Below are positions 1-37,016 of a stretch of DNA of 64,000 nt, piece after piece. This stretch comes from Anthoceros angustus (Eukaryota; Plantae; Anthocerotophyta). Made by a program: the position numbers and the translations under genes. The stretch's first letter is position 1. Each line of letters opens with the position of its first letter. The notes under the pieces are model-generated. The model was not told the DNA's origin and did not search any database. It was given only the letters and a program-made list of their open reading frames with translations. The stretch lies in assembly GCA_010909165.1 (NCBI GenBank), contig MU008202.1, positions 124,001 to 188,000 on the forward strand. The letters are read 5' to 3'.

Positions 1-26
1 TTGCCACAAAAGTGGCTTGTAATGGT

Positions 27-419
27 AAATTTTGCCCTCTACATTATAAAAAAGATTAAAAATTATAACCAATAGATTTAGTCAAAACTCAATAGAATCC
101 TTTAAAATGCTTACAAACGCCTCAAGAAATTGGAGCCATTACCACCTGAGTACTCATTGGATGGTCCGAATTTTAGCCTGTTAGAAAGGCTTGTTTGTGG
201 ACTATGTACTTGTTTTTGAGAAAAAGATAAAAATATTTTTGAGTCTAAGAAAAGCCCTTTCCAACACACTCAAAAACTCTACCATCGATCAATATCCCCG
301 TACAATGGCTTCCGTTTCTTAAGGGGTTAAAGTTTTTTAAAAGATTCTTTCACGTTTCGACCAGATATATTGGTCAAAATTTTTCAATTATTTTTTTATA
401 ATGTAAAGGGCAGAAGTTT
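27..419. repeat. Degenerate ~400-bp palindrome (foldback / MITE-like), centred near 220
   Basis: 27-54 AAATTTTGCCCTCTACATTATAAAAAA is an imperfect reverse complement of 393-419. The match continues inward (TCAAAAC..AGAATC..TTTAAAA..AAGAAA..GAGCCATT versus 304-360; GATGGT..TTTT..TGTT.GAAAGG versus 255-295). No TSD was identified. Confidence 0.65.
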
Positions 420-529
420 CACAGAAGGCCATCTTAGTTAACATGAATTAGTGTCATACAAAAGATATGCCCAGTGTTAAAGAACATGGATTAAAAGACT
501 TGATTTGAGTAGGTCGAACAGGATGAGGT

Positions 530-960
530 TAGTTGATGTCTAAGATGAAGAAAATTTTTACTCAATTCAGAGACTTTATAGATATTTCAAAGTATACATC
601 AAAGTCCCGCACTAGGTTTATTTTATAGATATTGTAAAGTATACCTCGAAGTCCCGCACTCGGTTTTTTGTCTGGAGTAACCCGATAGGGCACTAACAAC
701 TGGCGGACGTGGGTTTACTTTATAGATATTTTAAAATATACATTGAAGTCCTGCACTGGGTTTTTGTATCTGGAGTAACCCCATAGAGCACTAACAACTA
801 CCGTGGGTCGGGCAATACGAGGCTAGTTGCTGATGTCTAGGATGAAGAAAACTTTTCCTGAATTCAGACACTTTATAGATATTTCAAAGTATATATCGAA
901 GTCTCGTGGGTCGGGTCCTACGGGTTAGTTATTATCGTAGGAGCCAATGGTTTTGGACGA
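530..960 (+). repeat. Cluster of degenerate direct repeats (TTTATAGATATTTCAAAGTATACATC.AAGTCCCGCACT family)
   Basis: The motif recurs at ~576, 622, 718 and 870, with a further copy at ~1590-1635. GATGAAGAAAA..TTTT..AATTCAGA.AC recurs at ~544, 841 and 1567. Confidence 0.7.
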
Positions 961-2936
961 AATTTAATTAATTATAGCAACTATCAAAATTTTAAAAAAT
1001 ATTGAAATGAGTGACGAAAACTAAAATATGCAAATGGTAAGAGCCGAAAACATGCTGGTGTGCACATACCTCGGTTGTGAGGAGCAAGAGAGTGCACATC
1101 TCGGCCCAAGGAGGGGGAGAGTGCACTCCTCCGCCACTGAGATCCAATCTCCCGGTAGCACAGCAAGATTGGATTCAATTCTTCGAGGGGTCCTGGAATC
1201 TTGTGCAGCTAAAGCCTATGTTGCAGTATATTCTACACCTCTACTTAGGTACCCATCTATTTCATTTGGTATTGAAACCTAGGTTATGAGCCAGTCTTAA
1301 AAGGCTAAGATTAGGTAAATAGATAAAAAAAATTATAATATTTATTCATTATCTTTTCTATTCATTTATAAGTTATGATGTATTATAAAATTATATAGGA
1401 AGATATATTATTCTATATATTTAATATACTATTGAAATATAAAACATCAATGTATATTTTGTTAAAAACTAAAATTATAAACTCATACAAGTTGAATTTA
1501 TTTTTTCAAAAAACTAATTATTTGACATTAGGGTGTCCAAACCGGTGGCTCTTCGGTAATGTGTAAGATGAAAAAAATTTTACAAAATTTAGAGACTTAA
1601 TAAATATTTCAAAGTATACATTCAAGTCCCGAGGTTTTTTATGAAGAATGCCCAGCACACGGGAGACGAGGGCATGATGTTTGCGGCCATGAAGCGAGGG
1701 GATGAGTGATAACCCATCCAAACATTGATCAGTCCCAAGGACGCTGAAGTTCCGATGAACTCATGGAGTTCTAATATACTCATGTTTGGATGTAAAAACA
1801 TGAACAAAACTTGCTAGAACACTAGCATCCCAACAACATGACAACATACGGCAAATGTTGTAAGGCCAAGTCTTCCTCACCAAATTTCAATCATTCAAAA
1901 CTGTAAGGGTTGAAGAACAACGCGAGAATGAAAGTACGGGAGGGAAGATGACAAATCTTAATGGATTTAGAAGCACCTGTAGTTTGAAAATGGGCGATTG
2001 CGAGAGCTAGTCCCAACACGGTATCTTTCGAAGGGGGTGAATATTCACGAAGGGGGTTTTGTGAAATTTATCTCCTGAAGGGGGTTTCACATGGGTATTG
2101 AACTCGTGGTTTTGAGGTATGGGTGAATGTAAGGCAAAAAAGAAGGGTGAGAATTCATGTGAACCAGTGATACAAGGTCCATTTCAGGCCAGCGAAGGGT
2201 TATGGTGCAAGAGGTAACCTTATTTGGGGTGCATTTAAGACCCATGACAAGGGCCATTGCTGTCGGTCACTGCCGGTCTTTCTCGTACAACAACCCTAAA
2301 GACTCGTAAAAAGCACGGTGATCAGAATTGGATGACATGTTAACCTCCTGACAGTCGGGGAGCAAAGCAGGTCTGAGGAGAAGGGCACCGGCCGGCCGGC
2401 GCCCTTTTCCTGGCATTACGATGATGCCTTGCGAAAGGCGGAGAGTAGCAGGCCCATAGTGGGATGTGTGTACCAAAAGACTTTGGGTGTGGGGTGGGTA
2501 GGTAGCTTCTGCACACCCTCAATTGTGCCCGCAAATATAATCACATGGTTCAGTCCCACAGAGTGCAATCGATGAACGAAAAAAAGTGTGCGACAACCGG
2601 TTCTCGCCGACATATCGCACAGTAAAACATGCCCGCAAGGCTCATCGTGTGTTGCCTGTTGGTATGCCGCAATGGCAAGCGCGCAACTACCGCCACACTC
2701 CCCACATGTCCTTCCGCATGTAATGGAAAAAGGCTTGAACATTGGAAGCTATTAAGCATGTGAAGTCTACAACGGCACACAGAGAACAACCAAAACCAAA
2801 ATCCTATCATGGGCCTAGATTCTTTCCATAAATATGTACTGCGCTTGGAAATGTGCACTCCGAACTACAGGAATTGATCTTCACGCATAACCTCACCAAT
2901 TGCCCGTCGAAGATGACCTAACATTCATAGGGTTTC

Positions 2937-3150
2937 CTACTCTTCGCCAGACTCCATGCCATCATCTTCGTTGGGCACGGCATCATGACCATCATCTTCA
3001 CTGTCCTCGGTGGCACTTTGGCTCGCTGGTTGAATAAAGCCTCGCAATTCAATTTACTTATCCTTGATTGCCTTCTTATCTACAGCGTACAAATGTTTCC
3101 GCCATCAAGTTGAACTCATAATAGAGGATGACCGTTTGGTGAACAAAAAC
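2937..3150 (-). pseudogene. Element gene A, C-terminal remnant
   Basis: Translates as EVFVHQTVILYYEFNL / RKHLYAVDKKAIKDK*IELRGFIQPASQSA..E*, with one frameshift and one stop. Homologous to 16400-16632 in copy 2. Confidence 0.75.
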
Positions 3151-3863
3151 CTCTACTTACACGACAGTCTATTTCTACGCCTCAAAGTAATGCTATGCTT
3201 CACGTTTGGTGCACGAACATGCCCATATATTCTTCGAGAACGAAGCTACACATAGCATAGTATGAATGAATGAATGAAAACAGGTCCATAGGTGTTTTGG
3301 AAAATGCGTGCAACCATGGCATGAGAGGAGTTTCAATATACGCATCCATAAAGAGAACGGGCCGACGCCTTCCCCAACAAGCCTTGTACAGGGCGCCTTG
3401 CCAAGCTCCCCATGGGCGCAGGCCGGCCGGCGCTCTCCCCATGCATGTTCTCCTCATGGGCTGCCATTGATAAAATAGATAATTAGTGCTTCACACCTTG
3501 TTTGAGGGATAGTTAGTCAAGTGGTTTGTAAACAGTTTGAAAATCAATAGGATAGTTACTCAAGTGGTTTATAAATAGTTTAATAATCAATAGGTTGTGG
3601 GTTCAAATTCTCAAGAGGCTTAATAAACCAACTTTGTTGATTTTATGGGCGCATGGGCACGGGCATTTAAGGGCGCTAGCATGCCCATATATTGAGGCTG
3701 ACTTGATCCATGGGTATGAGGTTTTGCCACATGCTGACGAAGGATTGACATTCGAGGCCCACCGCAGAGGATTTGCGCAATTCTGGGCAAAGGAGGTGTG
3801 TGAGGACTCTTTGAAAGTGCAGGTGGTTTCTTTCAATACTCGTTGGCTGAGGACCAAAATTGG

Positions 3864-4010
3864 GGAGGACTGAACGAAGACTCAGAGGCTTTGGGCGAGA
3901 ACGATGGCTTCGATGAACGGGAACTGGAGCGGATTCGAAATTTGGTCATCATGATGGATTTGGAGTTCGCTCGAGCACCCGACGAGTCACACGTTAGCCA
4001 TAGAAAGTAG
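3864..4010 (+). pseudogene. Element gene B, C-terminal remnant
   Basis: NEDSEALGENDGFDERELERIRNLVIMMD aligns without gaps to NEYEQALEENDSFDAEDMDRLRNLAVVLD at 14082-14217 (-), 14/29 identical. Confidence 0.7.
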
Positions 4011-4706
4011 GCTTACGGTTCTGTAGGCACCTAGATGTGCCTCTTCTCTGTGTTCGTAATAACTTTTGGACCCGTTGCATTGAGGCAATTGATGATTTCA
4101 TTTTCCCCTCTTCCTCAAAAACGAAGCAAAGGCGCCGGTCGGCCGGCGCCTTTGCTTGGATTTGTTGTCTTTGTGTGTTGGAAACGGATTTTCATGATAA
4201 CTACTCGTTGGAAAACGGTCGACCTTTCTTGAAAACGAGGTAAAACGCATCTTTCGGGACTGTCGGGAATGTGCTAAGACGGTTTCCATGTCACAAAAGG
4301 GGGTTTGGATATTCACCCCCTTCGAAAGATACCGTGTTTCCCCTTTGGCCTAATGCCTCCTTGAGGGTTGGGGCCATTGCGGGGAGCTAGTCCCCTTGGC
4401 CCTGTGCCTCCTTGAGGGTTATTCCCCTTGAGTATAGATAATTTTCTCATCCCTTTTCACTACATAAAGTCTCCGTTAGTAACGGTATTGGTGAAATAAG
4501 GTAGAAAGGTGAAAAATTAAAAGAGGTAAAAAGCTAGTTTATTAGCTGCCCTGTTAAGAAGATGCATGTGTTGCTTGCTTCATGCAATCTCCTATTAGAG
4601 AGGAATTGCTAAAGCCACAAATGAAGAGCTACCTAGAGAGGACTCTTGTTGATCAGTGGTCTGTAAGAATCCCTAGATTTAACAGCTGCCTAGTTGAGGT
4701 CATGGC

Positions 4707-5219
4707 GGGATATATAAGGGCTAGAGCAAAGGCTTCTTAGGCCAGGTTGCAGGATATATTAGGGCTAGAGCAAGGGCTTCTCAGGTCAGGTTGTGGGATA
4801 TATAAGGGCTAGAGCAAGGGCTTCTCAGGTCAGGTTGTGGGATATATAAGGGCTAGAGCAAGGGCTTCTCAGATAAAGTTGCGGGATATATAAGGGCTAG
4901 AACAAGGGCTTCTCAGGTCAGGTTGCGGGATATATAAGGGCTAGAGCAAAGGCTTCTCAGGTCAGGTTGCAGGATATATTAGGGCTAGAGCAAGGGCTTC
5001 TCAGTTCAGGTTGTGGGATATATAAGGGCTAGAGCAAGGGCTTCTCAGATCAAGTTGCGGGATATATAAGGGCTAGAGCAAGGGCTTCTCAGGTCAGGTT
5101 GCGGGATATATAAGGGCTAGAGCAAGGGCTTCTCAGGTCAGGTTGCGGGATATATAAGGGCTAGAGCGAGGGCTTCTCAGGTCAGGTTGCGGGATATATA
5201 AGGGCTAGAGTAAGGGCTT
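4707..5219 (+). repeat. 44-bp tandem array, ~12 copies (GGGATATATAAGGGCTAGAGCAAGGGCTTCTCAGGTCAGGTTGC)
   Basis: Unit starts at 4707, 4751 ... 5191. Each unit carries TATATAA. Confidence 0.95.
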
Positions 5220-5290
5220 TGAGAAGGAGACACTCACTCTTTGAGAGAGCAGGCAAGTGTGCGCTGCAAGCCTTGTGTTGAGAGAGGTGT

Positions 5291-5390
5291 GGAGAGCTAG
5301 CTAGTGAGCTTGTCTGGAGAGCTAGCTAGTGAGCTTGTCTGGAGAGCTAGCTAGTGAGCTTGTCTGGAGAGCTGGCTAGTGAGCTTGTCT
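5291..5390 (+). repeat. 25-bp tandem array x4 (GGAGAGCTAGCTAGTGAGCTTGTCT)
   Basis: Units start at 5291, 5316, 5341 and 5366. Confidence 0.95.
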
Positions 5391-5837
5391 TGAGGTGCAA
5401 GGAGCTGGGCGTAGATAGCCGTGCTGGGCGAGATAGCCGAGCTGGGCGATAGCCGTGAGCTGGATGCAATAGCCAATAGCTAGTTAAGCGTAGATAGCCA
5501 GATTCCATCGTTGTTTTCTTTTAATAAAGAGCAGCACCTCGAGGAGGTGGCCTGCGTCAGTGGACGGCGGGCTACTTGGAGCCTAGTGCTGTGTTGTGAG
5601 GTTGAGAGCGCTGAGAATCGTGCAAGTCTCTTGTGGAGTGAATTGGCGAGGTCCTAGACCGCTAGGAAGCCAGCATTTGTCGCTTCCTTACTGGCTGCGC
5701 AGTGAGGGGTGTTACTTCGTTAGCTTTACTGGCTGCGCAGTGAGGGGTGTTACTCTGTTGGCTTTAGAAGCTACGGCGAAGTTTTTGGATATGGAATTGT
5801 CACGGTAGGCCGGCGTTTAGGTAATACAACATTGCTC

Positions 5838-6025
5838 AGATAATACAAGATAGCTTAGATAATACAAGATAGCTTAGATAATACAAGATAGCTTAGATAA
5901 TACAAGATAGCTTAGATAATACAAGATAGCTTAGATATTACAAGATAGCTTAGATAATACAAGATAGCTTAGATAATACAAGATAGCTTAGATAATACAA
6001 GATAGCTTAGATAATACAAGATAGC
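5838..6025 (+). repeat. 19-bp tandem array x10 (AGATAATACAAGATAGCTT)
   Basis: Near-perfect units from 5838 to 6009+, with no spacers. Confidence 0.95.
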
Positions 6026-6756
6026 GGGCCCGTGAACGAAGGCACACATGGAAGAAAGAGGTGAGGGGACAAGAGAGTACAATAAAGATACATAACGATC
6101 TTCATGGGGTTAACCCTAAAGGACGAACCTCCTCAACTTGAGTGGTTTTAAGTGCGTCATTCGGGATGTTTTCTACATCGATTCATCATCTTGGACCTCT
6201 CAGCATATGTGCCTAGCAAATTGGGGATATGATAGGAGTTCTCGGTGAGCGGGTGCGCCATGTAGGAGATAGTTTGTATAAGGTGTCCGAGATCCGCCAG
6301 AGGGCGAGGCTGAGGCCGAGGCCGAGGTCGTGGCAAAGGACCAGTACCCACACACTCTGACAATCCTATTGAACATATTTTCATTGGAGAAAGTTCATCT
6401 ACTCAAACACCTGCAAGAGGTAACAGCAAGAGTGGACGAATTTGCGGTCACTTCCCGAGTCCGACGGGATCTGCTCCTCCACGGATTTAGGGGTACCTGG
6501 ATTCCAAAAGGAATCCCGGTTTATAAGAGCCCTGTCTAGTCCCTTTGGTCGCAAATTGTGTGTATGGCACCAATTGATTTCTAATGTGCATAGTGTGCTC
6601 AACATAACTTGTTCTTGGTATCATTCTCATCGCTTGTCTGCAGTAGGGCAGGCGAGACGTAGAGAGGTGAGGTGTTTGTCTTTCCGGCATATTTGTTGCC
6701 GTTGTCATGGCCTGCAGCTGCTCGGAGCATCTAACATGTGGGGTCTTTGTCCTTAG

Positions 6757-7304
6757 GATAACCAACGGTGCTTTCTCCGGACTTGTTGGGAGGTGGGTAA
6801 AGTCCTTGGACAGCTTTTGTGTGGCCTTAGTAGTGATTTGGTTATGTGGGATATTGAACTGATTTGCCACCCATTTTTCTTTGGCCAGCTTCGCCTACTC
6901 GCATCGGAATGCCTTTGGAAGAAATCAAAAGCTCAACATTTCACTCGAGAGAGGGCAAGCCATAGCGGTGGCTCCTCACAACCTGAATGAATCTGGCCTG
7001 TTGACGTGAGATTCTACTAAGCTGTGCTGTTCTTCGCAGAGGGGTTGGAGCTCGTGATGACAAAGGGCAACCAAAATATGTGGATATTTTCTAAAGCCCC
7101 CTGACATTCAGGTGTGCCTGGTAGTTTTTGTGACGCTGCAGATATGCTACTGCACTAGCAGTCTGCCTTTCGAATTTTGTCTCTGACATGCGGTCTCTTC
7201 ATATTGCAGTGGCCGAGGTTATGATGACATGAGCTTATGATGACATGTTAGGGGCAAAATTGGAGACTCTTTACACAGATTCTGGTGACAACGGGTCGTC
7301 TCAA
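6757..7304 (+). pseudogene. OEP80: Internal fragment of OEP80/TOC75-V (Omp85 family) with introns retained
   Basis: Exons ~6757-6792, 6889-~6958, 7040-7111 and 7210-7304 translate as ITNGAFSGLVGS|[23 protein letters not shown] ... GVGARDDKGQPKYVDIF*SPLTF|GRGYDDM(dup)LGAKLETLYTDSGDNGSSQ. These match plant OEP80 motifs ([26 protein letters not shown]; AKLES.YTGSGD.GS). There is an in-frame TAA at ~7092 and a 16-bp duplication that shifts the frame. Confidence 0.85.
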
Positions 7305-8222
7305 GTGAGTAGTCTTTCTCATTTTCCTTGTCAATGCTGCTTCCCAAGTGAACGTACGTCCTTTGATGCTTTTTCATGCTTGATGCAATTTTGATTTCCT
7401 CAGTTTCTTCATTCGATCCGCGCCAGCTTGTCGCAAAGAGCTTGGCTCTGGCTCATACCTGGGAGCCATGTTACAGAGGTCTGTATGGCGCGGGCTCAGC
7501 AAATGAGTCGAGGTAACAATTCAACCTTTCACATGTTAAGGCCCTTGGAAGCGTTTCCTCGTCCCCAACGTTGCAGAGGACGAGGAAGGAGTGCCGAATA
7601 GCAAGTGAACATTCTGCTTATGACTTGTCCCTAGACGTATTGAAATCTTATGACTTCTCCCGAGACGGATTGAAATCGGCACGAAATAATAGAAGTAATA
7701 TAGGCTTGTTAGGTGGTCATCTTACAGGGTCATCCCACTGGACTCAAGACTCAAGCTCACGAAATGCGACTGGGTAGGTCTCTTAGAGCAAACTGCGGTA
7801 CCGGAAGATTTTGTTCCTACAAATAAATGCAAAAAGTAGAGGAGTCAACCAGTATCATCCTCCCATACACAGGATTCGCTACTTCACGCACCAGAAGGTA
7901 GAAGAAGAAGTAAAGAATTCTGTCATACAGTGCCTAAGCTACTCGAACCAGGGGCATCCACTCCCTCTAGGCACCCAGTCTAAGTACCGATCAAAGCACA
8001 GGATGCCTAACAGCGTTCATATACTACGACATGCAACTGACTGGGTTTGGTAGGCGGCTGTTGGGGGTTGGGGCTGTGGACGTCGGCCAGGTACGTGGCC
8101 GGGCGCCGGTGATGAACTAATACTAAGGGGTGGTCTTCGTTACAGTCCAGCACCACCTGTACGCTGAAGCTGAAGCAGGTCACATCATTGGCAGGACCAC
8201 ACTCAAGAATAATCTACATAGA

Positions 8223-11200
8223 CTAAAGAATAACAGGCGCATCCGCTGGGCACAAGTCCAAGTTGCGTAAAACGATCTTCGCAAAAACTTTAGCCTGCAC
8301 TTGGGCACTTGCGGCTGCGGCAGCAGACCGCAAAACCCGCGCTGCCCCTGCCTTGTGCAGAAGGCTTGCATGATGCATTGCATGACGCCCTCCCGGCATT
8401 GTGAACTACAGCAAACACGATCAAGCACTCAGTTCTACGAGACCGTCACATACCTTCTTCACGTTCTTTGTACCCAGAAGACAAAATCGAGCATAGAACC
8501 GGTAAGGTAAGCCTGTCTACCACGAAGTTGAAAATCATTACCTGAAGAAGAGCAAATGCGGCACAAGCCCGGAGAACAGGTGAGCAGTTCCGAAGCATAG
8601 TAACAAACCTCCCCACCTCAGCTCCACTGAATGTAACAAGATCAGCTGTTAGCACAGTTCCTTGTACCATTCTGAATACAGAAGAACACCGCAGCAAGGA
8701 AGTCCATATACTACCTGCACCGCAGGTGGCCAGCCTCTGTTATGCGTGCTGAGTCGGCCACCTGGTGAAGGAGCGCAGGTGTCCAAGAAGAAGCAGCCAG
8801 GGCAAGAGAAGCCGTGTCGGAAAATGCCTGGACGAAAATTTCAATGTGCTTGAGAGCCATTTTCCTTGCTGCTTCGAGACCTCCATTTCAGTGAATGCTT
8901 CACAGTGGGCACCAGCGGAGACCACTTCATCCATTCTGCTAAAACAAATCAGACATTAACACCCTCCACAGACACAAGATACACAACCTGAGACTCAGGA
9001 CGACATTTCCTGAGTTTCCAATTCTGGAGGACGTGGAAACAATTGCCACGTCCTCCAAAACATGTCGTCCTCCAGAAACTGACGAAGCCAGACTGCGAAA
9101 AGCAACGAACCTTCCATCAAACATATATGCCAGAGCAAGGGCTGCCATAAACCGTGCCATTTTTGACCCAGAATTGGAACAAAGGTGGACTAATGCAGGT
9201 ACACCATCTTCCTCCACCATGCGCAAAGCATTCCCTGCGTTGAAGGCTAGATTCCACAATGCACCAGCCGCGGTTTCATGAACATCCTGAAAGAGGGGAA
9301 GACCGAAACAGACGTTTCAGTCCAATCCTTGATCCCATCATTTCCAGTGTGGCTACAGTCACAAGATGATTCATTTGACCTCTGCAACAAACCTGTTGCC
9401 CTCATGGTGCAATATGGGATCTTACCTCAGAATCTGACCGTGCCAGGGCAATAAGAGGTGCCACGCCACCTTCCGTCCAATTGCAATGCTGAAAACCCAG
9501 AAAATTCATTGTTTCACCAGATGCAGGCATGTCCTCGTCAACATGAAAGCTTTCAGGAACCTACAAGGGCTTGAGAGAAGGCCAAGCATGATGCAAGCTC
9601 GGACAAAAGGGTCATTCAATCTCACCTGTTGGCTTCAGATACTGAGAGACCCCAAAGAGCTCCTGCTGCCCTCTCTTGCAATCCCTGAGAGCCATTACTA
9701 CAGCTTTGAGCCAAAGCCACCTGTACCAACCAAGACAACCTTCACATTTTAGTTGATCTTAACACAGGGTTCCACAGCACAGCGACAGAGTCTGAACAAA
9801 GGACTTCACTTTGACTACACTGGCTACTAGCACTTCATATGGACATTACCAATGCTTCCACTCCCCAGCAGCCGCAATTGCCTCACGGTTTCTGTCGTCA
9901 AAGAAAGATTCCACAGAGCTCCTGCAGCCTCCTGCCTGCAATCCACATAAAAGCGGAAGAGAGAATCAGTGTCTACATGGACAATATCAACTGAAGCGAT
10001 TGCCAGTCATTCAAAACTCCCTCACGGCCACTTACGGACACCTTCATGATGTGAGCAGGTAAGCTGCACAAGTGCATCAAGAGCCCCGTCCTCCCGGCCT
10101 ACAGCAGCATTATTTCCGTTACTGTCACCATGTGCTGCTAGATTAGCTAGTGCACGAGCTGCCTGTGTTCAATAATAACAAGTCTCTGTCAGCCCAAGTG
10201 TGCAAATGAAATCTGAGGCATTGCACAGACACCACTACCTATCAAGGATGATTGTAGCTTGGATTGGCACAATGACTTTACCTGTTCTTGGACACCTTCA
10301 TTCTTGCAAAATCGAGCAAGCATTACAAGTGCATGAACACCACCAGCCATAGCTACTTCCATGCTGCATTTATCATCTGCAGCAAGATTCGCCAAAAGCT
10401 CCAGCAGCACGTTCCTGAGATAGGAACAACTGTGCTTAGTTCCTACTCCAACGAACTTCCAACTGCACCCTTGGGAAGAAAAGGCAAAAAGAAAGAGTAC
10501 CAAGACTCCCTCCCGCCTGATGGCCACTTGAAAGCTAAGTCCACCAAAGCCTCGATAGCACCAGCCTCCGCTATGGCACCCTGAATTACATATGTGCATA
10601 CATGAGACAAACATGAGAATCAGATAGACGCCAACATACGAGCATCTAGGGAGCTCTTTTCAAAGGTATCCACCTCGATAATTACCTTATGCTCATCACC
10701 AACCGAAAGATTCCAAAGACCACCTGCAGCCTCCTCAGCTACCCAGCGATTGGGTGACCTGGCTAAGGCTGCTAATATACTGATGCCTCCCTCCATTGCA
10801 ACTGTCTTAGCCACTTCTGTGTTTACCGATAGGTTTGCTAGCGCCTGCAAGGAGCAAACGTATAAGAGAGGAATGCAAGACATCCAAGACATACAATGTT
10901 CCAGGAGCTGTGTGTCGTGAACCAACAAAAAGTACAATACCTTGGCTGCTTCTGACTGCACACCCTCACGGCTGGACTTGGCAAGGTTGAGAAGATAAGC
11001 GATGCCACCACCATTCATCACAGCTTCAGCTCTGTTCAGGTCAACTGTTGCATTTTCATCATCAATAACAACAAATGTGGCAAGCGCAGTTGCACCCCTT
11101 TCCTGCACTTCCTCCTGAGAGCTTTTCACAAGACTAAGCATCACAGCAGTGCCTTGCTTAAGCCAAAAGCTGTCCAGTCCTGGGAGATTACTTTCTGCTA

Positions 11201-12356
11201 TCCGCAATAAAGCATGAGACAACACCCACTCAATCCAGTCGCTCAGCTCCAGATTTTCTGGTCTTGCAAGCTCATGCTTTTCGACTTTCTCCAATCCAGA
11301 AAAGGGTTTTCCTCTTCACACCGCACACAGTCCTGCCGGATGCCTGGGATAGAGACTCAAACGAGAGTGAGGCCAGGCCCTTGACAAGATCCGTAAACCG
11401 GGCCAGCAGGATCTTGGTGTGAGAATTATAGGACACGTTGTCGCTGCCGTCCTCAAGCAGGGGACAATTAAGAGCGCAGAGGACCTTCAATTGCGGCGCT
11501 GCCAGAAACGCGGACGCAGCCGAGGGTGTAATCTCCGTCCGCGACACATCCACAGCCACCAGATTAGGCAGCTGCTTCGCCCAGAGCTGTGCTGCGCTGG
11601 CCCATGAGATGCTTCTGGATCCCGCCACGGACAACAACCGCAGACTGGTGGCGGTCCCCAGGGCACCCTCGTGGACTGAGCTGCAGTCAAGGAGACCCAA
11701 TTCGCTGAGGTCCGGGCACCCCTTCACCAGCGCCCCAATGGCCTCGGCGTCGACCTCCCTCACCCCCGACAGGCGCAGCCGCTTCAACTTGGGGCAGCAC
11801 AGGGCCACCACCTTGATCGCGTCGCTGGTGATTCTCTCGCAATCCGGCCCAAGCTGCAGGCTTTCCAGCGCGTCGTGCTTGGCAGCCAGCCACGAGAGGT
11901 GGGCATCCGACAGGTCCCTGCATGCGTCCCGCACAGTTCCCGTAACTCTCTGGCCTGCAGCGAGACGATGACCCCGGTTGCAGCGCCCCGGAACCTCAGC
12001 CGCTCCAACTTGGCACATCTCCCAGAAAGAGCCGATGCCATAGCCATATCCAGCGAATGCGCACGGAGATCCAGCGACGTCCACAGACACGGGGACGATG
12101 CCAACCGCCTCCATGCCCGGCACACCGACGCCAAACTGGACCTGTCTCTGTAATTTAGTAAACCGAATAATTGAATGAGCGCATCATCGGGCAGGCTGGT
12201 CCACTCCGCGTCGTATTGCCCTCCCACGCACACAATTTCCTCCTCCTCCTCCTGCGCAGCTTCGTACACCGCCTCCAGCGGCCTCTCGGGAGCCCTCTTG
12301 CTGGCCGTCGGCTTCACCGATATTTTGATTGCCTTCCGGCGCACTCTGCGAATCAT
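8223..12356 (-). CDS. ARABIDILLO: ARABIDILLO-like F-box / LRR / armadillo-repeat protein, multi-exon (copy 1, complete 5' and 3' ends)
   Basis: N-terminal MIRRVRRK; F-box WTSLPDDALIQLFGLLNYRDRSSLASVC; LRR region; ARM repeats (EEAAGGLWNLSV, ANLAADDKCSMEV, ARFMAALALAYMFDGR); last exon FTMPGGRHAMHH..AKIVLRNL with stop at 8223-8225. At least five 1-bp indels lie in short runs and are in frame in copy 2, so they are probably consensus errors. Confidence 0.85.
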
Positions 12357-13199
12357 GGCTCCCGCCTGGCAGCTGCCACACTGAATTAGCCCCCAAACCT
12401 AGGCTCCACCACCTCCCTCAAGGCGCCTCCAGCCCGGGCACGGGAGCCACAGCCACAGCCTCGAGAGCGCCCCTCCCACGGCAGCCACAGCCACAGCAAG
12501 ATCCCGGACTAAGGCGCCCCGACCCCGGCCCCGGCCCCGGCCTCGGCCTCGGCCTGCGACAGCAAATGCGAATTCGGCCCTGCCGGACCCCAATTTGCCC
12601 CAGCCCCTCCGTCCAACATAGTCGCAGCTCACGGAAGCCCTCCCTGGCATACATAACCCGGATTCAAGATGTCTCTACATATCTCCACCATGGCCAATTC
12701 CGGCATGTGCCATTCGCCATGCTGCCATCACAATTATGCGCTGCCCGCTGTTGCTGCTCGCCCGCCTTTCATCGGCCTGCAAGCCACCGGAATGCAATAT
12801 CATCTTTCACCACGCCGCTGCATCACATCCGTCGCATACCAGCCCGCCCCACCCCAACGCGACGCTCCCTGCGACTGAGCTCGAAAGATCGCGATACTAA
12901 TAGGGCTACCAACCAGGGCACACCTACGAAACCTCAATGCACTTATGCGACCCCGCCTCCTAGACGAACTCTACCTAATTAACATAACACCATGCATACC
13001 ATCCTACGCTATCGTTATTCTTTTATAAAAGAATATCCCGCATTATTTTTCCAAGGCAGCCGATTTCAACAACTTTTTTCTCCTCCTCCAACCGTCCCAC
13101 ACTCTTGAAGGCAATGGGACGATGGCTCTTTCCTTGCTAATTCTCCCAAACATTGTTTGCCTTGATTTAGTTCGACTCTTTCTCTCTTCCAGCTTGATC

Positions 13200-13685
13200 A
13201 TATCTCCTAGTATTTTCCACGCCGGTGAAGACTATGAATTGGGGTTCTCATCTATGCTACGTACTCTAGCCTTCATGAGTATTGTTCATGCCAGGTCTCC
13301 AAGTTCTCTTCGCCTGTTCAGTCATGCTACACATTATAGCCACCATGAACATTCTTCCTACCAACTCTTCTAATACTCTCTTCATGAATGTTGTTCATGC
13401 AAGTTTTCTTCGGCTTTTCGTACATGCTACATATTGTGGCTACCATAAATAATATTCCTGCCAACTCTCTCTGTACTCTTGGAGAAGGTGAAGACTATGC
13501 ATCAGGGTGTGGCTACCATAAATAATGTTCCTGCCAACTCTCTTAGTACTCTGTGAGCATGAGCAGGTGAAGACTGTGCATCAGGTTTTCGTACATGTTA
13601 CATATCGCGGTCACTATGAATATGATTTCTACCAAGACCCTTTGGAAGACAATGGACAAGTGTTGCTGGAGCGAAGGCGATGAAG
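13200..13685 (+). repeat. Degenerate ~70-100 bp repeats (GGTGAAGACTATG / GGCTACCATAAATAATGTTCCTGCCAACTCTC), block X
   Basis: The motifs recur several times between 13220 and 13600. The segment 13438-13685 plus 17037-17068 is copied at 31092-31368. Confidence 0.75.
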
Positions 13686-14081
13686 AACATGATAATTTTT
13701 GAAGGGGGGGAATATAGTAAGCTCCTTCGGTCGAAACAACACCCCCTTGTCACAGTTTACACCCTTCCTACGATAGCATATCTGCCAAGCTTTGATAATC
13801 GGCACACCCTTTATGAGTCCATACCTTTGATAAAAGACACACTTTCAATTCTACACCCCAGAACTAGAGCACTGTAGGGCGTGGGCCCGTGTGCATTTTT
13901 GTAGAATGCACAGTGGGCTGCTATTTGCATCTGTTTATTACTGCTGAAAACGTTTACTTTTCAAGTGGTGGAACACGATAAAAATCATGCTTCTACTTGC
14001 GAGAGTCTCCTTTCAGTATTCGTGAAAACCTTGCAATAAACAATTGCTAAAGGAGGAAGTGGTCATCAGCATCAACAATAG

Positions 14082-14217
14082 TCATTCAAGAGGGCGGCCT
14101 AGCAACTTGTCCATGCCTTGCGCCGATGCTGAGTCAAGGACCACTGCCAAATTCCGAAGGCGGTCCATATCCTCGGCGTCAAAGCTGTCATTCTCCTCCA
14201 ATGCTTGCTCGTATTCA
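14082..14217 (-). pseudogene. Element gene B, C-terminal remnant
   Basis: NEYEQALEENDSFDAEDMDRLRNLAVVLDSASAQGMDKLLGRPLE*, homologous to 3864-4010. Confidence 0.7.
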
Positions 14218-14581
14218 TTAGTCTAATTCTTGGGCTGAGCTTACAACGGTGCTGACTGCCATATAACATTTAGGATCTGCTGACCTTCATCTAATAGCTC
14301 GCTAGTCGTGGTCTTCAACCTTCTGGCACTCAATGCAACCACTTGGACTTTAAGGCAATGCCAGCGTCCTTAAAATGAACAAAGTTGGTTAACCATGCGC
14401 CCATGCCCGAGTCCTTAAAATCAATAAGTTGTTTTGTGATGCTAGTAGAGGTTTTGTACTCAAAACCTATTAATTACCGCACTTTTTCTTCAACTACTTG
14501 AGCAACTACCCCAAATTACATGCATCTTGAACCGCTAACTATTTATTTTAACCAAGATAGCCTATGAGGAGGACAGCTATG

Positions 14582-14770
14582 GGGAGGGCGTCGGCCGGCC
14601 GGCGCCATGGGAAGGGAGAGCATCTTTGGGGAGGCGTCGGCCGGCGCCATGGGCGTGGGCGTCTTTGCGGGAGGGCGCCGGCCGGCATGCGGGCGTCTTT
14701 GCGGGGAGGCCTCGGCCGGCGCCATGGGCGTGGGCGTCTTTGCGGGAGGGCGCCGGCCGGCATAGGCCGC
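14582..14770 (+). repeat. GC-rich GGCCGGCCGGCGCC / GGGCGTCTTTGCGGG repeat core of element copy 2
   Basis: Several nested copies. Related motifs occur at ~2385, 3360-3440 and 4130 in element copy 1. Confidence 0.85.
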
Positions 14771-14811
14771 TAGCACCACCCGTCGGTGCATGCGGTGGAG
14801 CTAGGGGAGGG

Positions 14812-16632
14812 GACAAGAAGAGGCAGCGGTATCCTATCACCGACGAAGGTGTGGCCCATTTGCGGGAAGGGTTAAAAGATTTGCGTCCATAGGTGACTCA
14901 AGAGTACAAGTGGTGGGAAGCCTTTTGGTGGACCAAGGAGATTCTTGTCATTGTGGAGAAAACATCGAGCTAGTGCTAGAGCGCCCTTGGAAGTGGTTTT
15001 CACGTGCGTAAGTGGATCATACCACCACTTCAAGTCTTGGATGACGCTTTCTTTGGATGAGGCATTATTGAGAGACCTCCACAGCGTGATATGTACTTGG
15101 GAGCATATCAAAATGCGAAGGCAACAGCGGGAAATGACACGGATGAATGAGGACATAACCAATCCGGAAGGGATGTTCTGGCGGTGCCGTGCACTCACCA
15201 TAACAGTCATTCGGATTGGGAAGGTCATTGACTGAAGCTAAATGCACCACGACCTCACTTTCTTATCCACTAGTATCGGACCGAGCACATTACCCAAAAT
15301 GCATACAAGAGGTATTTGTGAATGAACAAATATCCCAGACATGGGTTTGTATTGAGCGACGGAAACATTTGTATGCGGTGGACAAAAAGCGGTAAGGGAT
15401 AAGCTTTTGCAGTTGCGCGGACTTCATGACGAGTCAAAGTGCCGTTGAAAATTGCGACAATCTTTGGAGAAGCTGGACCAAGGAGATTGTCATTGTGGAG
15501 AAAAACATCGAGCTAGTGCTAGAGCGTCCTTGGAAGTGGTTTTCACGTGCAGAAGTGGATCATACAGCCCGACCACTTCAAGTGCCGGATGACGCTTTGC
15601 TGGATGAGGCATTATTGAGAGACCTCCCACAGCGTGATATGTACTTGGGAGCATATCAAAATGCGAGAAGGCAACAGCGGGAAATGACACGGATGAATGA
15701 GGACATAACCGAAATCCGGAAGGGGATGTTTCTGGCAGTGCCGTGCACTACAGACACGCATAACAGGTCATTCTGGATTGGGAAGGTCATTGACGCGAAG
15801 CTAAATGCACCACGACCTCACTTTCTTATCCACTAGTATCGGACCGAGCACATTACCCAAAATGCATACAAGAGGTATTTGTGAATGAAACAGTCATCCT
15901 GTATTATGGGTTTGTATTGAACGTACGGAAACATTTGTATGCGGTGGACAAAAAGCGGTAAGGGATAAGCTTTTGCAGTTGCGCGGACTTCATGACGAGT
16001 CAAAGTGCCGTTGAAAATTGCGACAATCTTTGGAGAAGCTGGACCAAGGAGATTGTCATTGTGGAGAAAACATCGAGCTAGTGCTAGAGCGCCCTTGGAA
16101 GTGGTTTTCACGTGCGTAAGTGGATCATACCACCACTTCAAGTCTTGGATGACGCTTTCTTGGATGAGGCATTATTGAGACCTCCCACGCCGTGATATGT
16201 ACTTGGGAGCATATCAAAATGCGAAGGCAATGGAAATGACACGGATGAATGAGGACATAACCGAATCCGGAAGGGATGTTTCGGCGGTCTGCGCACTACG
16301 TATAACGACACCGTGTCATTCGGATTGGGAAGGTCATTGACGCGTGCTAAATGCACCACGACCTCACTTTCTTATCCACTAGTATCGGCATTACTACCCC
16401 AAAATGCATACAAGAGGTATTTGTGAATGAAACAGCCATCCTGTATCATGGGTTTGTATTGAACGTACGGAAACATTTGTATGCGGTGGACAAAAAAGCG
16501 GTAAGGGATAAGCTTTGCGAGTTGCGCGGCTTCATACAGCCTACGAGTCAAAGTGCCGTTGAAAATTGTGACGACAATGCTGGAGAAGCTGGACCAAGTG
16601 ATGACGAAGGATTGAACTATGGGGATGAGTAA
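14812..16632 (+). pseudogene. Element gene A 3' part, internally triplicated (~550-bp unit) and frameshifted
   Basis: DKKRQRYPITDEGVAHLREGLKDLRP*..WWEAF; IRKGMFLAVPCTTDTHNRSFWIGKVIDAKLNAPRPHFLIH*Y; EVFVNETAILYHGFVLNVRKHLYAVDKKAVRDKLCELRGFIQP..GDE*. Unit starts (GGACCAAG) at 14930, 15475, 16041 and 16591. Confidence 0.75.
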
Positions 16633-17320
16633 AACTCAAATCACAGTTTGTCCCGAGGTCCCAGAGTGAATGTTGTACGTTCGGTTCCAGATGTTACCGT
16701 GTTTTGGAAGTATCATGTCCGTGGCTTTTGTTGTGTCCTTACTAAACCATTTTCCTTCCAAAACTGAATTTACGGTCATCCCTTCCCGGCAAAAACGGCC
16801 TTCCTTACAGGTCCCACTTTGCATTAATCCCATAGGTTCGAGTTTGCGACCACCATTCGACAGAAACATTGCTGGTTGGAAAGTAGTAATTTTACTGGGT
16901 CACACCCTTTTTTTCCAAGATGTTTTCCGGAATGACTAATAAACGCTGTTTTAGGGCCCATCAAAAACCCCCTTCAGAGATTATGTATGGAAAACCCCCA
17001 TCGAGATTATTCACCCCCTTCAAAAATTATGGTGTTGAAGATAGTTGTAGTGTATTCCTACATGGATTTTATGTGTATGGAAACTAGATTAGGATAGGTA
17101 GTTTATTTTAATATAATATATTTGTTTCATCGAAATCTGGATCTCTTTTAGGTGCGGTATTGCTTAGAGCGAAAAAGCTCTTACCAAACCATGTAGCTGA
17201 ATATGTATGACTACCTACATAGCACCGGGTGAGTCGAAGTTGTTGGTAGCATTGCAAATGTGTGTTTGGATTCATGTCCCAAAGTGCGACCCCACCTCCT
17301 AGACATCTGGAGGCAGACAT

Positions 17321-17514
17321 TGTGAACTTTCCTAATGTATAGAAAATAGCGGAAGCATGAATTAGAAAAGATTAGAAAATTCATAGGTTAGGGGCCCTTT
17401 TATAGGGGACCCGGGCACCCCTTCGTAGGGGCTGCGATCGTCGCTAACGAGCTAGGTTAGCCTAACTCGCCTCGACTATTGGCTAGGGTTATGTAACTCT
17501 TACTAAACTTAACA
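17321..17514 (-). repeat. 3' LTR of the Copia-derived element
   Basis: TG..CA termini, adjacent to the PPT, nearly identical to 20751-20937. Confidence 0.92.
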
Positions 17515-17642
17515 CCCCTCTTAAGGGTAACATAACCTAAGCTATGACTCTTGTCGGACGTAACGACCAGGGTGGAGACTATCTTCCATGGAGCGACGCC
17601 TCGTGGCGCGCCTCCCTCCGAGCTAAGTCTTCTCTCTGGCAG

Positions 17643-18902
17643 TCAGGGATGCCGGGCTACGAGGGTGGCGGCGGGTCCACTCCTCACGGTGAATGAGAGC
17701 CCCGCACAGCCGCCTTGAGGCACGGCTGTGAAGAGGCCCAAGTCAGGATTTGTTGTCCTGAAAAAGCGACATGACTCCCTTGAAGCAAGCATCTCGAGAT
17801 CGCCTTCCTTCAGAAGCTGAGTCATAGACACCAGGTTTTCGCCTATTTGCGGGACGGGGAGCACAGGCTCCAAGGTGGCCGAACCATCCTTGAGGAGGAA
17901 GTTCGCAAGTGCTTTGTCCCATGATTGGCGGTGGTTCGCTCTCATCACCAAGTAACACTCTCTCCTTGAGTGCAGTGTCGGCTTGGTGAATAGAGTATGA
18001 TCGTTGCATATGTGGGCGATGGCTCCTTTGTTGAGTACCACCCCGCATCCTAATGCACACAGGTGTTGAGGCAAACCGCAAGTATCTTCACGGTCCTTGC
18101 CTTCACGTGTTGGCGTTCCCTCAAGCTGCGGCCTGGCAGTCGGCGTTCTGCTCTCTTGCGGCACTCGTGCCCAATGGCCGCCCGCACCAATTGCGCTCCG
18201 GCTCGAGGAGGCGCAGAGGTTGAGTCACCTTTAGGGGTGAAATTCGCCTTGCCCTTGAATTCCTCCGGGCTTGAAAGCGGGTGGAAAGCGCTCTGCGCAT
18301 CGGGCTTGGACCCTCCTGAGAGGCGCTCCTGTCGCCGGCCGATGATGTCCTCCACCGCCGAGAGGAGGTTGAGCCGGTGGTGCATGGTCGCCATCGGTCA
18401 GTGACGAAATCTTGGTAAGAATCAGGAGACTCATTAGGAGTTGAGCGTCGACCTCGGTCATCGTTGAGCCGAGAGGCTAGCGCCCTCGCAATCGCCGGAA
18501 CTTAGATGTGTGAGCCGCCACCGTGTCGACTCCTTCATCTTGAGGCGTTGAATTCACATGTCGCTGTACAAGGTTAGAACATTGTTAACGTTATGCGTGT
18601 TTGATAGTCCCGGATGGCGGAAGCCTCGTAAGGAACTCCTGGCAGGCACCGGGCTTGAGTCAAGTCGATCGGGGCGCTGCAATTCCGTTCGTATTCCACT
18701 TCTCGATATCTGCTGAGAGGAGGAGGAGTTGTAGTGGGGTCGCTTTGGGTTGCGTCAACTATCTTCCAAACGCCGCCGATGAGGTCGACTTCATCCGGAC
18801 TCGCCATCTTGGATAATGCTGGCCGTTGAACCGGTCTTTCTCCTTGATGTGGTCGGTGAAGATGGGTATGGCACCGGGGTCAGTCGAGGTCCTGCTGGCC
18901 AT
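17643..18902 (-). pseudogene. Copia gag-protease remnant, frameshifted
   Basis: DRFNGQHYPRWRVRMK (Copia gag N-terminus), AQLLMSL, and a protease-region segment GAIAHICNDHTLF..VLPVPQIGENLVSMTQLLKEG. Confidence 0.8.
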
Positions 18903-19414
18903 CCTCGTTGGCGTGTTCAAAGAGAGTGAGCTCAAGCTGCGGATCGTCCACAAGGAGTTGTAACTTGTGGTCATAAAAGGCGGGCCTAGGAGGCGATCGG
19001 CTCCCTCGCTCCGGCTCGCTATTGCGCAGACGGTGGACCAGATCCATGAGCTCGTCGCGGGCCGGTGTAATAGCCTAGAGTGCCCACCTCACTGCCATCA
19101 TGGTTACACGAAGCTCAAGGGTCCATCCTCCATAAGTGCCGACAGGATATCTCGGAGGAAGTGAGTATCCCTCTCTGGCTTACTCTTGATTTCTTCTGTG
19201 AGAGTTCTCCCTTGTTGTGTCTTCTTTTCTTCTTCTTTTTGTTGGTTTCTCCCCTCCCTTTCTTTCTCCTTTCGCTCCGCCGGGGCTTGCTTCCTCTTTT
19301 TCTTCCTTTATTTCTTCTTCTTCTTTCTTCAGCGAAGGTTCCCCGTCTTGGCCCTAATCGAGCACCAGAGTGCTTAACTCCCGAGTTTGGATAGGAGCTC
19401 TGGTTTGCAACCAA

Positions 19415-19485
19415 AGTGAATTGGTGTAGTGGTTGGTGCTTCCGTGTGCCGGCAGCAGGTCGCGGGTTCGATCTCCGTTGGCGCG
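19415..19485 (+). other. tRNA-derived (SINE-head-like) sequence with Pol III A and B boxes
   Basis: A box TGGTGTAGTGG (19422-19432). T-arm GCGGG-TTCGATC-TCCGT (~19462-19478). The acceptor stem does not pair, so this is not a tRNA gene. Confidence 0.6.
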
Positions 19486-20738
19486 TCCGTCTGAGTTTTG
19501 CGGAAGAATAAAAAGATAAGGGACGGGTAGAAGGCCGGGCCGCTTACGGTGCAGGGGGCGGTTCGGCCGGCCCGCCGTCCACGCAGGCGCCCGCCCGCGG
19601 CGCGCCGCGCGCGCGAGGCGCGCGCCCCCTCGCGGCGGGTGCGCGCTGTCGCGTCTGTGGCGCCGTGCCGTCCCTCGGCCGCGTCCGCGGTTCTCGGGGC
19701 GCGGCCTCGCGGCGCTCGGGGCCTCCGTTCGTGCCCGCTCACGCTCCGCCACACGCCGAACGGTCTCGGCCTTGCACTGGGGATCTCAGGCGCCCGCTCC
19801 TCAATACGAGGCACAATCCCGGCCAAGGTTGGGGGCGGATTGCGATCCACGTGGCGCGATCCCTATGGCGCTCCCGGATTGCGATCCACGTGGCGCTCCG
19901 TGCTCCTTGCTCGGTTGGGATGCGGTGGGCGTGTCTCGTCGGGAGATCCGGCCCGCTGCGGTCAGATTCCGATCTGGATGAGGGCGCCATCAACTCCAAC
20001 GGTCGGATCTGGGCGTGCCCGCCTCCACGCTCCGCGCTCGGGTTGGGAATTCCTCCATCCGGTGGCCGAGGCGGAGGGATCTGATGCCGGCGCCTCCGCC
20101 AGCGCTTGCAGCTTGCAATTGTTGGATTGCCTCCAAAGATGCTGGAGGAGAAACGGTTCTCCTAGTGAATTCTGCGGGGGTCATGCTCCGGCGCGTCTTC
20201 TCCCCAGTTGCCGGGGAGTCACGGATCGGGGGCGCCCCCCCGCCTCAGGGCCTATTGCAGATCCGTGATGAGGCCCTCCTCGCTCGCGTGTTGGGGTCAA
20301 TCTGACGAGAAGCGGCGAGGAACAAAAGAAGAAATGAACAATTTTTTTTTTTTTAAGCCCATGCACGCATGTCGCTAGATATGTAGAAAACTAAAGCAAT
20401 TGTTTCTCAAGTGGAGGTGAGGGGCGGTGGCGAGGCTCCCATCGAAACTCCGCTATGAGCGCCTAGTATGGATTAGTACCCGAGTGGGGGACCGGTCCCG
20501 CTGATTTTTGTTGTTGTTGTTTTTTCTTGATGGTGCGGTCTTGGGAAAGGGAAAAAACAAAGCTACCTATCCTAGAGACATAGGATACTAGTTTTTTTTT
20601 TTCCTTCTTCTCCTCCTGCAACAAGAGGACTAATCCCTGCGGACTAATCCGAGTGAGAGAAAGAAAGAACAAGGGAGGGGTAGGGCGCCATGGGCCAGCC
20701 ATGGCGCCCTTCCGGCCGCAGGCCTCAGTGGAGCCTGG

Positions 20739-20750: not shown

Positions 20751-20937
20751 TGTGAACTTTCCTAATGTATAGAAAATAGCGGAAGCATGAATTAGAAAAG
20801 ATTAGAAAATTCATAGGTTAGGGGCCCTTTTATAGGGGACCCGGGCACCCTTCAGAGGGTCGATCGCTTAACGAGCTAGGTTAGCCTAACTCGCCTGACT
20901 ATTGGCTAGGGTTATGTAACTCTTACTAAACTTAACA
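20751..20937 (-). repeat. 5' LTR of the Copia-derived element
   Basis: TG..CA termini, adjacent to the tRNA-iMet PBS. Confidence 0.92.
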
Positions 20938-31091: not shown

Positions 31092-31368
31092 AGGCTACTA
31101 TAAATAATGTTCCTGCCAACTCTCTGTGTTTCCTTGTAGAAGGTGAAGATTATGCATCAGGGTGTGGCTACCATAAATAATGTTCCTGCCAACTCTCTTA
31201 GTACTCTCTGAGCGTGAGCGGGTGAAGACTATGCATAAGGTTTTCGTACATGGTACATATCGCGGCCACTATGAATATGATTTCTACCAAGACCCTTTGG
31301 AAGACAATGGACAAGTGTTGCTGGAGCGAAGGCGATGAAGATAGTTCTAGTGTATTCCTGCATGGATT
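31092..31368 (+). repeat. Second copy of block X, lacking the TIR element (empty site)
   Basis: Matches 13438-13685 joined directly to 17037-17068 through a single GAAG. Confidence 0.9.
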
Positions 31369-31370
31369 AT

Positions 31371-36807: not shown

Positions 36808-37016
36808 GGCTCCCGCCTGGCAGCTGCCACACTGAAGTGTTACATAACTTGACCTAGCTCTGCTTGGCCGAGTGAGCAGAAACAAGCAAGCAAAAAGAGA
36901 GCTGTTGCAGCTCAAGGCGATGCAATTTTGGCATACTGCACGGGGAAATGAAGCTCGTGGGGACGTAAGTGGCTTGGCGACCTTGATCGTGTGCCGACCT
37001 CGGTCTCCCGCGCAGC

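Follow-up and report, generated by a model that had tools for sequence, protein, structure and literature searches.

The 2,324-bp segment at positions 2015-4338 of the window (the whole 64-kb stretch of hornwort DNA analysed here) is likely to be a non-autonomous cut-and-paste DNA transposon of the Sola1 type, a deletion derivative immobile by itself, which we call element 1. Its ends are perfect 30-nt inverted repeats (2015-2044 and 4309-4338) that stretch to 33 nt at 97% identity and give the termini AACAC...GTGTT. TCCC directly abuts both of them (2011-2014 and 4339-4342), and the next bases outward yield neither a longer inverted repeat nor a 5-bp duplication. When the 64 kb were searched with the terminal inverted repeat (TIR), allowing up to three mismatches, the two ends were the only matches, while shuffles lead one to expect none. 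The perfect 30-bp TIR and the TCCC duplication described in an earlier sequence-only reading of this DNA are both borne out by these findings. The terminal features of element 1 are as follows:

2011-2014, no strand: left target site duplication (TSD) TCCC, a direct reading, with the same 4 nt at 4339-4342
2015-2047, + strand: left TIR, starting AACACGG, perfect over 30 nt and 97% over 33 nt
4306-4338, - strand: right TIR, ending in CCGTGTT
4339-4342, no strand: right TSD TCCC, a direct reading

Element 1 interrupts one of two neighbouring repeat units of ~51 bp, and the other unit provides a proxy for the empty site:

4371-4420, no strand: intact sister copy of the locally duplicated ~51-bp unit, carrying TCCC once

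Rejoining the flanks of the element with a single TCCC produced a 38-bp match to 4384-4420, which spans the junction at 89% identity with one 1-nt gap (E 2e-4 against the whole window). The split repeat unit and its intact neighbour with a single TCCC had been read correctly from the letters, but what had been called a tandem repeat is merely a two-copy duplication of ~51 bp.

A diverged sister copy, element 2, lies at 13686-17036 in inverted orientation, and patches of it are 71-78% identical to element 1. It ends in AACA...TGTT, with AACAT at its terminus, and is flanked on either side by GAAG (13682-13685 and 17037-17040); the TIR variants of the two elements begin AACACGGTATC... and AACAYSATAATTTTTGAAGGGGG.... 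This second insertion likewise has a paralogous empty site in the window:

13682-17040, no strand: sister element 2 including its GAAG duplications, inverted relative to element 1
31093-31383, no strand: paralogous empty site of element 2, with the left-flank match running to 31340 and the right-flank match starting from 31337

The empty site is 94% identical to the left flank and 85% identical to the right flank, and the two matches overlap by exactly GAAG, which fixes the TSD at 4 bp. The length of 4 previously deduced from the intact unit beside element 1 therefore holds there and, independently, at the sister element; a TSD of 5 bp, which fits element 2 alone and not element 1, was rejected. 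The two different duplications, TCCC and GAAG, support the view of a DNA transposon that is bounded by TIRs with AACA...TGTT ends and duplicates 4 bp of target without sequence specificity. Tandem repeats and segmental duplications abound in this region, which could speak for a non-mobile origin, through local rearrangement or an inverted repeat arisen by chance. Such an origin is extremely improbable, given a perfect inverted repeat that shuffles would not produce and two insertions that are independent of each other and differ in their 4-bp duplications, and it is refuted by the presence of an empty site for each.

No transposase ORF or remnant was found in element 1, in element 2 or in the rest of the window, and because of this the assignment to Sola1 is made from the ends and the TSD only, which render it probable, not proven. 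Pfam contains no Sola model (PMC5751038, PMC12973397). The curated element Sola1-1_Ec32 from the brown alga Ectocarpus has AACCG-CGGTT termini and a TSD of 4 bp (PMC12477816, supplementary file 3), and its best blastp match is Sola1-1_PPa_tp, a Physcomitrella entry in Repbase (PMC12477816). The hornwort elements resemble Sola1-1_Ec32 as TIR-bounded cut-and-paste elements with a 4-bp TSD (TCCC and GAAG, with an empty site for each) and AAC...GTT termini, although the terminal bases that element 1 has in common with it are the first three only (AACAC...GTGTT versus AACCG...CGGTT). The hosts of Sola1-1_Ec32 and Sola1-1_PPa are, as here, non-angiosperm photosynthetic eukaryotes. In size the two differ greatly: element 1 measures 2.3 kb with TIRs of ~30 bp, whereas Sola1-1_Ec32 measures 21.5 kb and has imperfect TIRs of 282 bp.

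A second point of comparison is the published TIR of the insect Sola1_NA MITEs (PMC3845634, Table 1), which are known from Bombyx, Rhodnius and Heliconius and are likewise non-autonomous, with TIRs of ~28-36 bp and a 4-bp TSD. In an end-anchored alignment with no internal gaps, the four ends of elements 1 and 2 match the first 27 nt of this TIR at 17, 17, 15 and 17 positions, counts reached by 1, 2, 122 and 6 of 20,000 shuffles, respectively; this likeness was noticed first and then tested against one published reference only, and it falls short of the Repbase rule, which allows no more than one mismatch in 11 terminal bases. The common core, TTTTGAA.G.GGTG, lies at an equal distance from the end in the insect and the hornwort sequences. 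On the other hand, the insect MITEs are only 0.2-0.7 kb long and, unlike the elements described here, carry no ORF remnants; their three terminal bases are GGA or GAC, not AAC, and their targets are AWWT/AWDT, not TCCC or GAAG. A preference for AWWT has been called a hallmark of animal Sola1 (PMC3845634), and neither hornwort TSD fits it, so that the earlier failure to recognise the target preference was correct. The algal Sola1-1_Ec32 departs from AWWT as well, its target being ‘biased towards ending in A’ (PMC12477816). Taken with the termini and TSD of Sola1-1_Ec32, the likeness to the insect TIR supports the earlier suggestion that the family is most plausibly Sola-related and narrows it to Sola1. 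To call the family poorly described, however, was an overstatement: the superfamily Sola is well established and already figures in lists of the DNA transposons of non-angiosperm plants (PMC9804982, PMC12973397), and a Physcomitrella Repbase entry exists. The hornwort elements are probably further members of it, uncommon but ordinary.

Several other groups of DNA transposons also generate TSDs of 4 bp. PiggyBac and Kolobok are set aside by their specificity for TTAA (PMC9587614), which neither TCCC nor GAAG shares, and Sola2, with AWWT/ATAT duplications and GGCGG...CCGCC-like termini (PMC3627910, PMC12477816), by the AACA ends and GC-containing TSDs seen here. Ginger1 and most Ginger2 elements, integrase-type DNA transposons that are rare in plants, do make 4-bp duplications (PMC2836005, PMC12973397), but they have TGTNR termini, and Ginger1 targets CCGG/CCGT while Ginger2 targets AT-rich RTATAY (PMC2836005); with AACAC/AACAT ends and TCCC/GAAG duplications, a Ginger origin is highly improbable and was excluded. 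It is quite unlikely that the elements belong to AcademX, to a relative of PHIS, to a CMC/Chapaev-like group or to IS481EU. The reported TSDs of all of these include 4 bp, with 3-4 bp for AcademX and 0-4 bp for PHIS (PMC10045372), and the AcademX length is compatible with TCCC and GAAG, although that class is also defined by an Academ transposase with a nuclease. Yet no published termini resembling AACAYG were found for these groups, in a comparison made without Academ termini, and the TIR and terminal matches favour Sola1 instead. IS481EU, moreover, has been reported from parabasalids only, and its likely member Banshee is reported to start with TGT (PMC10045372).

Inside their conserved ends, both elements carry broken remnants of two small diverging ORFs, which we call genes A and B; the two ORF remnants of element 1 diverge as do the two genes of Sola1-1_Ec32. 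In element 1 the remnants are:

2937-3156, - strand: C-terminal remnant of gene A (EVFVHQTVILYYEF... ELRGFIQPASQS... acidic tail, stop), from tblastn against element 2, with blastn patches of 71-74% identity
3556-4010, + strand: broken remnant of gene B in two frames (...NEDSEALGENDGFDERELERIRNLV...), from tblastn against element 2

The greater part of gene A is deleted from element 1, whereas element 2 carries it as a unit of ~550 bp in three tandem copies; the gene B remnant is 42% identical over 38 aa to element 2 at 14106-14219 (- strand). There is no long ORF in the elements, and none of the ten stop-free frame pieces from both had a hit in Pfam, where the best matches, Replitron_C (E 0.15) and 4HB (E 0.18), were at chance level only; because of these two results, both elements are regarded as non-autonomous. 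The same Pfam comparison of frame pieces detected no ParB-methyltransferase remnant in either element, and in this, as in the lack of a detectable transposase remnant, element 1 is unlike Sola1-1_Ec32. HMMER, run with the best piece of gene A against 1.84 billion representative proteins, returned three hits, of which two, P0001 (374 aa) and P0003 (244 aa), are credible relatives; both are unnamed Logan ORFs with no Pfam domain, and the third, P0002, was rejected as a low-complexity repeat protein. A word-index search with P0001 found only itself, so that Pfam, HMMER and word-index searches together gave no similarity of the internal remnants to anything classifiable. ESM Atlas searches, run twice, gave no score above lead level, and an AlphaFold2 model of P0001 from a three-row alignment was unusable (mean pLDDT 36). 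Neither the gene A alignment nor a degenerate TIR pattern matched anything in scans of metagenomes, and Rfam gave no match on positions 1-20000 of the window.

These orphan remnants bear on the possibility that the elements represent an undescribed superfamily or deep lineage, one that has converged on Sola1 in its 4-bp TSD and AAC ends and owes its mobility to an unknown transposase. The window links no transposase to these ends, the TSDs contain GC in place of AWWT, and gene A has two credible relatives only among 1.84 billion representative proteins, neither with a Pfam domain, all of which would suit such a lineage. We nevertheless consider it unlikely: at three of the four ends very few shuffles reach the observed likeness to the Sola1 MITE TIR, and a curated Sola1 element that does carry its transposase is described with exactly AAC...GTT termini and a 4-bp TSD (PMC12477816). 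Gene A itself, at ~370 aa and belonging to no DDE-like family, is not a transposase candidate.

The preferred assignment to Sola1 leads to a possible mode of mobilisation, for which the subterminal sequences of the two elements provide a clue. The window has eight GAAGGGGG sites, of which seven fall within the ends of elements 1 and 2. In element 1, GAAGGGGG(T) occurs on the + strand at 2030, 2049 and 2077, the three subterminal recurrences noted previously, and on the - strand at 4316-4323, in the right repeat. One end of each element bears three direct motifs at almost the same offsets (element 1, 16/35/63; element 2, 16/35/62), and the opposite end of both has a single motif and an inverted copy. 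GC-rich palindromes occupy the interior, and within the window the GGCGCCGGCCGGC motif is confined to the two elements:

2030-2084, + strand: three direct GAAGGGGG motifs at offsets 16, 35 and 63 from the end (16, 35 and 62 in element 2)
4296-4303, + strand: extra inverted AAAGGGGG motif at the one-motif end, with its element 2 equivalent at 13741-13748
2376-2411, no strand: GC-rich palindrome around GGCGCCGGCCGGC, the first of three copies in element 1
3412-3437, no strand: central GC-rich palindrome between the diverging ORF remnants, homologous to element 2 at 14528-14614
4118-4163, no strand: GC-rich palindrome of 46 nt, copy 3

Non-autonomous elements of the Ac/Ds and En/Spm types have undergone internal deletions but keep their TIRs and asymmetric arrays of short subterminal motifs, to which the transposase presumably binds. 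The analogy with the elements described here is one of mechanism only, since Ac/Ds and En/Spm belong to other superfamilies, with other termini and TSDs of 8 and 3 bp. The GAAGGGGG motifs are candidate transposase-binding sites. A DDD transposase of Sola1, encoded at another place in the genome, would act in trans, binding the ~30-bp TIRs and the subterminal motifs, excising the element and inserting it through a staggered cut of 4 bp. Repair of the gaps would then yield the 4-bp duplication, TCCC for element 1 and GAAG for element 2.

More tentatively, and with rather low probability, the two elements could belong to a land-plant sublineage of Sola1 with relaxed, non-AWWT targeting and its own two-gene accessory module, consisting of genes A and B and the GGCGCCGGCCGGC palindromic core. 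Such a module may stand in place of, or beside, the ParB-methyltransferase gene that other Sola1 elements are known to carry, and gene A, an orphan family of ~370 aa, might represent a novel accessory protein of transposons. In a less likely version of this reading, the ends may be served by a transposase other than that of Sola1.

Sola elements are seldom found in plants and have been reported to be absent from angiosperms. In what is otherwise an ordinary transposon annotation, a hornwort family with sharply defined limits and an empty site for each of two copies offers a clean reference for annotating elements with 4-bp TSDs in bryophytes. If the assignment to Sola1 is correct, Sola1-type elements of plants need not insert at AWWT, and the GAAGGGGG motifs, with their conserved spacing, would provide testable candidates for the binding sites of their transposase.

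The element at 2015-4338 (element 1) is probably a non-autonomous, internal-deletion DNA transposon of Sola1 type, to judge from its sequence. Its 30 terminal bases, AACACGGTATCTTTCGAAGGGGGTGAATAT, occur at exactly two sites in the 64-kb window, 2015-2044 (+) and 4309-4338 (-), still only two with three mismatches allowed, and 100 shuffles gave zero matches, which bears out the perfect 30-bp TIR described in the sequence-only reading; the repeat lengthens to 33 nt at 97%. TCCC, already proposed as the target duplication, directly abuts both ends (2011-2014 and 4339-4342). When the flanks are rejoined with a single TCCC, they match the adjacent unit at 4384-4420 over 38 bp (89%, one 1-nt gap), crossing the junction. 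The insertion was thus correctly described as splitting a repeat unit that survives empty next door, but the supposed tandem array has two units only, each ~51 bp. Element 1 lies in a repeat-rich, partly AT-rich stretch, with satellite arrays directly downstream:
4617-5307, satellite array of 44-bp units
5262-5411, satellite array of 25-bp units
5779-6063, satellite array of 19-bp units

A diverged sister, element 2, occupies 13686-17036 in inverted orientation and is 71-78% identical to element 1 in patches. Its ends are AACATGATAATTTTTGAAGGGGG... and ...TGTT, GAAG flanks it on both sides, and its insertion site has a paralogous copy in the window that lacks the element: there, 31093-31340 is 94% identical to the left flank (13438-13685) and 31337-31383 is 85% identical to the right one (17037-17084), and these two stretches share exactly four bases, GAAG. 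Element 2 alone would permit a 5-bp duplication; at element 1 the bases just outside TCCC allow neither an extension of the TIR nor a fifth duplicated base, which rules out the 5-bp reading and leaves 4 bp, the length first proposed, as the one common to TCCC and the GAAG overlap. Since these two duplications are unrelated, the target has no fixed sequence.

The 94% block that is the source of this empty site is older than, and lies beside, a recent segmental duplication (9000-12385 versus 33450-36836, 98.9% over 3.4 kb) carrying F-box/LRR and Armadillo-repeat ORFs; homology of the right flank stops ~48 bp past the insertion point. Just right of element 2, a ~194-bp direct-repeat pair (17321-17514 and 20751-20937, 94%, 3.4 kb apart) may have arisen by local duplication or be the LTRs of a small retroelement.

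With respect to superfamily, the curated Sola1-1_Ec32 of the alga Ectocarpus has AAC...GTT ends, a 4-bp duplication and a transposase nearest to a moss Repbase entry (PMC12477816), and both our elements have the same ends and duplication length; the ends AACAYGATAATTTT have been noted for a family outside the window. In an end-anchored register free of internal gaps, the four ends share the core TTTTGAA.G.GGTG with the TIR of the insect Sola1_NA MITEs (PMC3845634 Table 1), matching it at 17, 17, 15 and 17 of the first 27 nt, values equalled or exceeded by 1, 2, 122 and 6 of 20,000 shuffles, respectively, for a likeness that was seen before being tested, involves one published reference and falls below the Repbase rule (11 terminal bases, at most one mismatch). 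We regard it as good but not formal support for Sola1. A preference for AWWT targets has been considered a Sola1 hallmark (PMC3845634, citing Bao et al. 2009), and TCCC and GAAG both depart from it; because the algal Sola1 departs from it too, we do not take AWWT as defining. Ginger is excluded by its TGTNR termini and its CCGG/CCGT or AT-rich RTATAY targets (PMC2836005), and piggyBac and Kolobok by their requirement for TTAA (PMC9587614), and Sola2 does not match, given its AT-rich duplications (PMC3627910) and the GGCGG...CCGCC ends of the curated Ectocarpus library (PMC12477816). Membership in AcademX, whose duplications of 3-4 bp (PMC10045372) take in the length seen here, is less probable. 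Together, the termini, the 4-bp duplication and the TIR sequence support the earlier idea of a Sola-related family and narrow it to Sola1.

The motif GAAGGGGG(T) recurs subterminally in element 1 at 2030, 2049 and 2077, the three copies of the sequence-only reading, with one more in the right TIR. Measured from one terminus, the first two motifs of this type lie at 16 and 35 in both elements, and the third at 63 (element 1) or 62 (element 2); the opposite terminus of each has one motif inside the TIR and one inverted copy further in, and seven of the eight GAAGGGGG sites of the window fall in the ends of the two elements. Such spacing, kept in copies only ~75% identical, suggests functional sites, and the analogy to subterminal repeats in other TIR transposons makes them candidate transposase-binding sites. 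Also confined to the two elements are GC-rich palindromes around GGCGCCGGCCGGC (12 matches in the window, 0.02 expected):
2376-2411, palindrome in element 1
3412-3437, palindrome in element 1
4118-4163, palindrome in element 1
14587-14761, palindromes in element 2

The palindromes of element 1 sit between two diverging ORF remnants, genes A and B, which flank the central palindrome on either side, and downstream of each remnant as well; in either element such palindromes may act as promoter, terminator or recombination site. Of the two genes, B is broken in both elements, and A is best kept in element 2, as three tandem copies of a ~550-bp unit (14929-16598) that are 87-89% identical to one another and all carry frameshifts or stops. 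The remaining ORFs show the following:
2937-3156, - strand, gene A remnant of element 1, last ~50 codons and stop only
31387-32046, Sec1 C-terminal fragment adjoining the empty site of element 2
37148-39013, Sec1-family ORF, intron-less, full-length, 622 aa
43575-46340, PPR protein with E motif, 922 aa

Frame pieces of both elements matched nothing in Pfam; a Replitron_C hit at 14897-15232 (+) (E 0.15; 12.9 bits, where the cutoff is 27) was judged to be chance, as the element has TIRs and duplications. Replitrons lack both. Searched against 1.84 billion representative proteins, the best gene A piece found three matches. One, P0002, is a repeat protein; the others, P0001 (374 aa) and P0003 (244 aa), are true relatives, both single-contig Logan ORFs devoid of Pfam domains. 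A word search with P0001 gave no further relatives, metagenome scans with the gene A alignment and a degenerate TIR pattern gave no matches, and the AlphaFold2 model of P0001 was unusable (mean pLDDT 36). By these comparisons gene A is an orphan family, with two credible relatives among those proteins and no Pfam domain; its conserved motifs are PWxW, MYLG and FWI(A/G)KV followed by HWW/HWY. No transposase is encoded by either element or present elsewhere in the window, where the large ORFs are ordinary plant genes (Sec1, the PPR-E protein and F-box/LRR proteins); this makes both copies non-autonomous.

We infer that a Sola1-type DDD transposase encoded elsewhere would mobilise element 1 in trans, recognising it through its TIRs and asymmetric GAAGGGGG arrays and integrating it at 4-bp staggered cuts with no strict target sequence. 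Sola is counted among the plant DNA transposon superfamilies, although absent from angiosperms (PMC9804982), and few of the active TIR elements in plants belong to it (PMC12973397). Its presence in plants is thus already known, and the two Anthoceros elements would add a further member.
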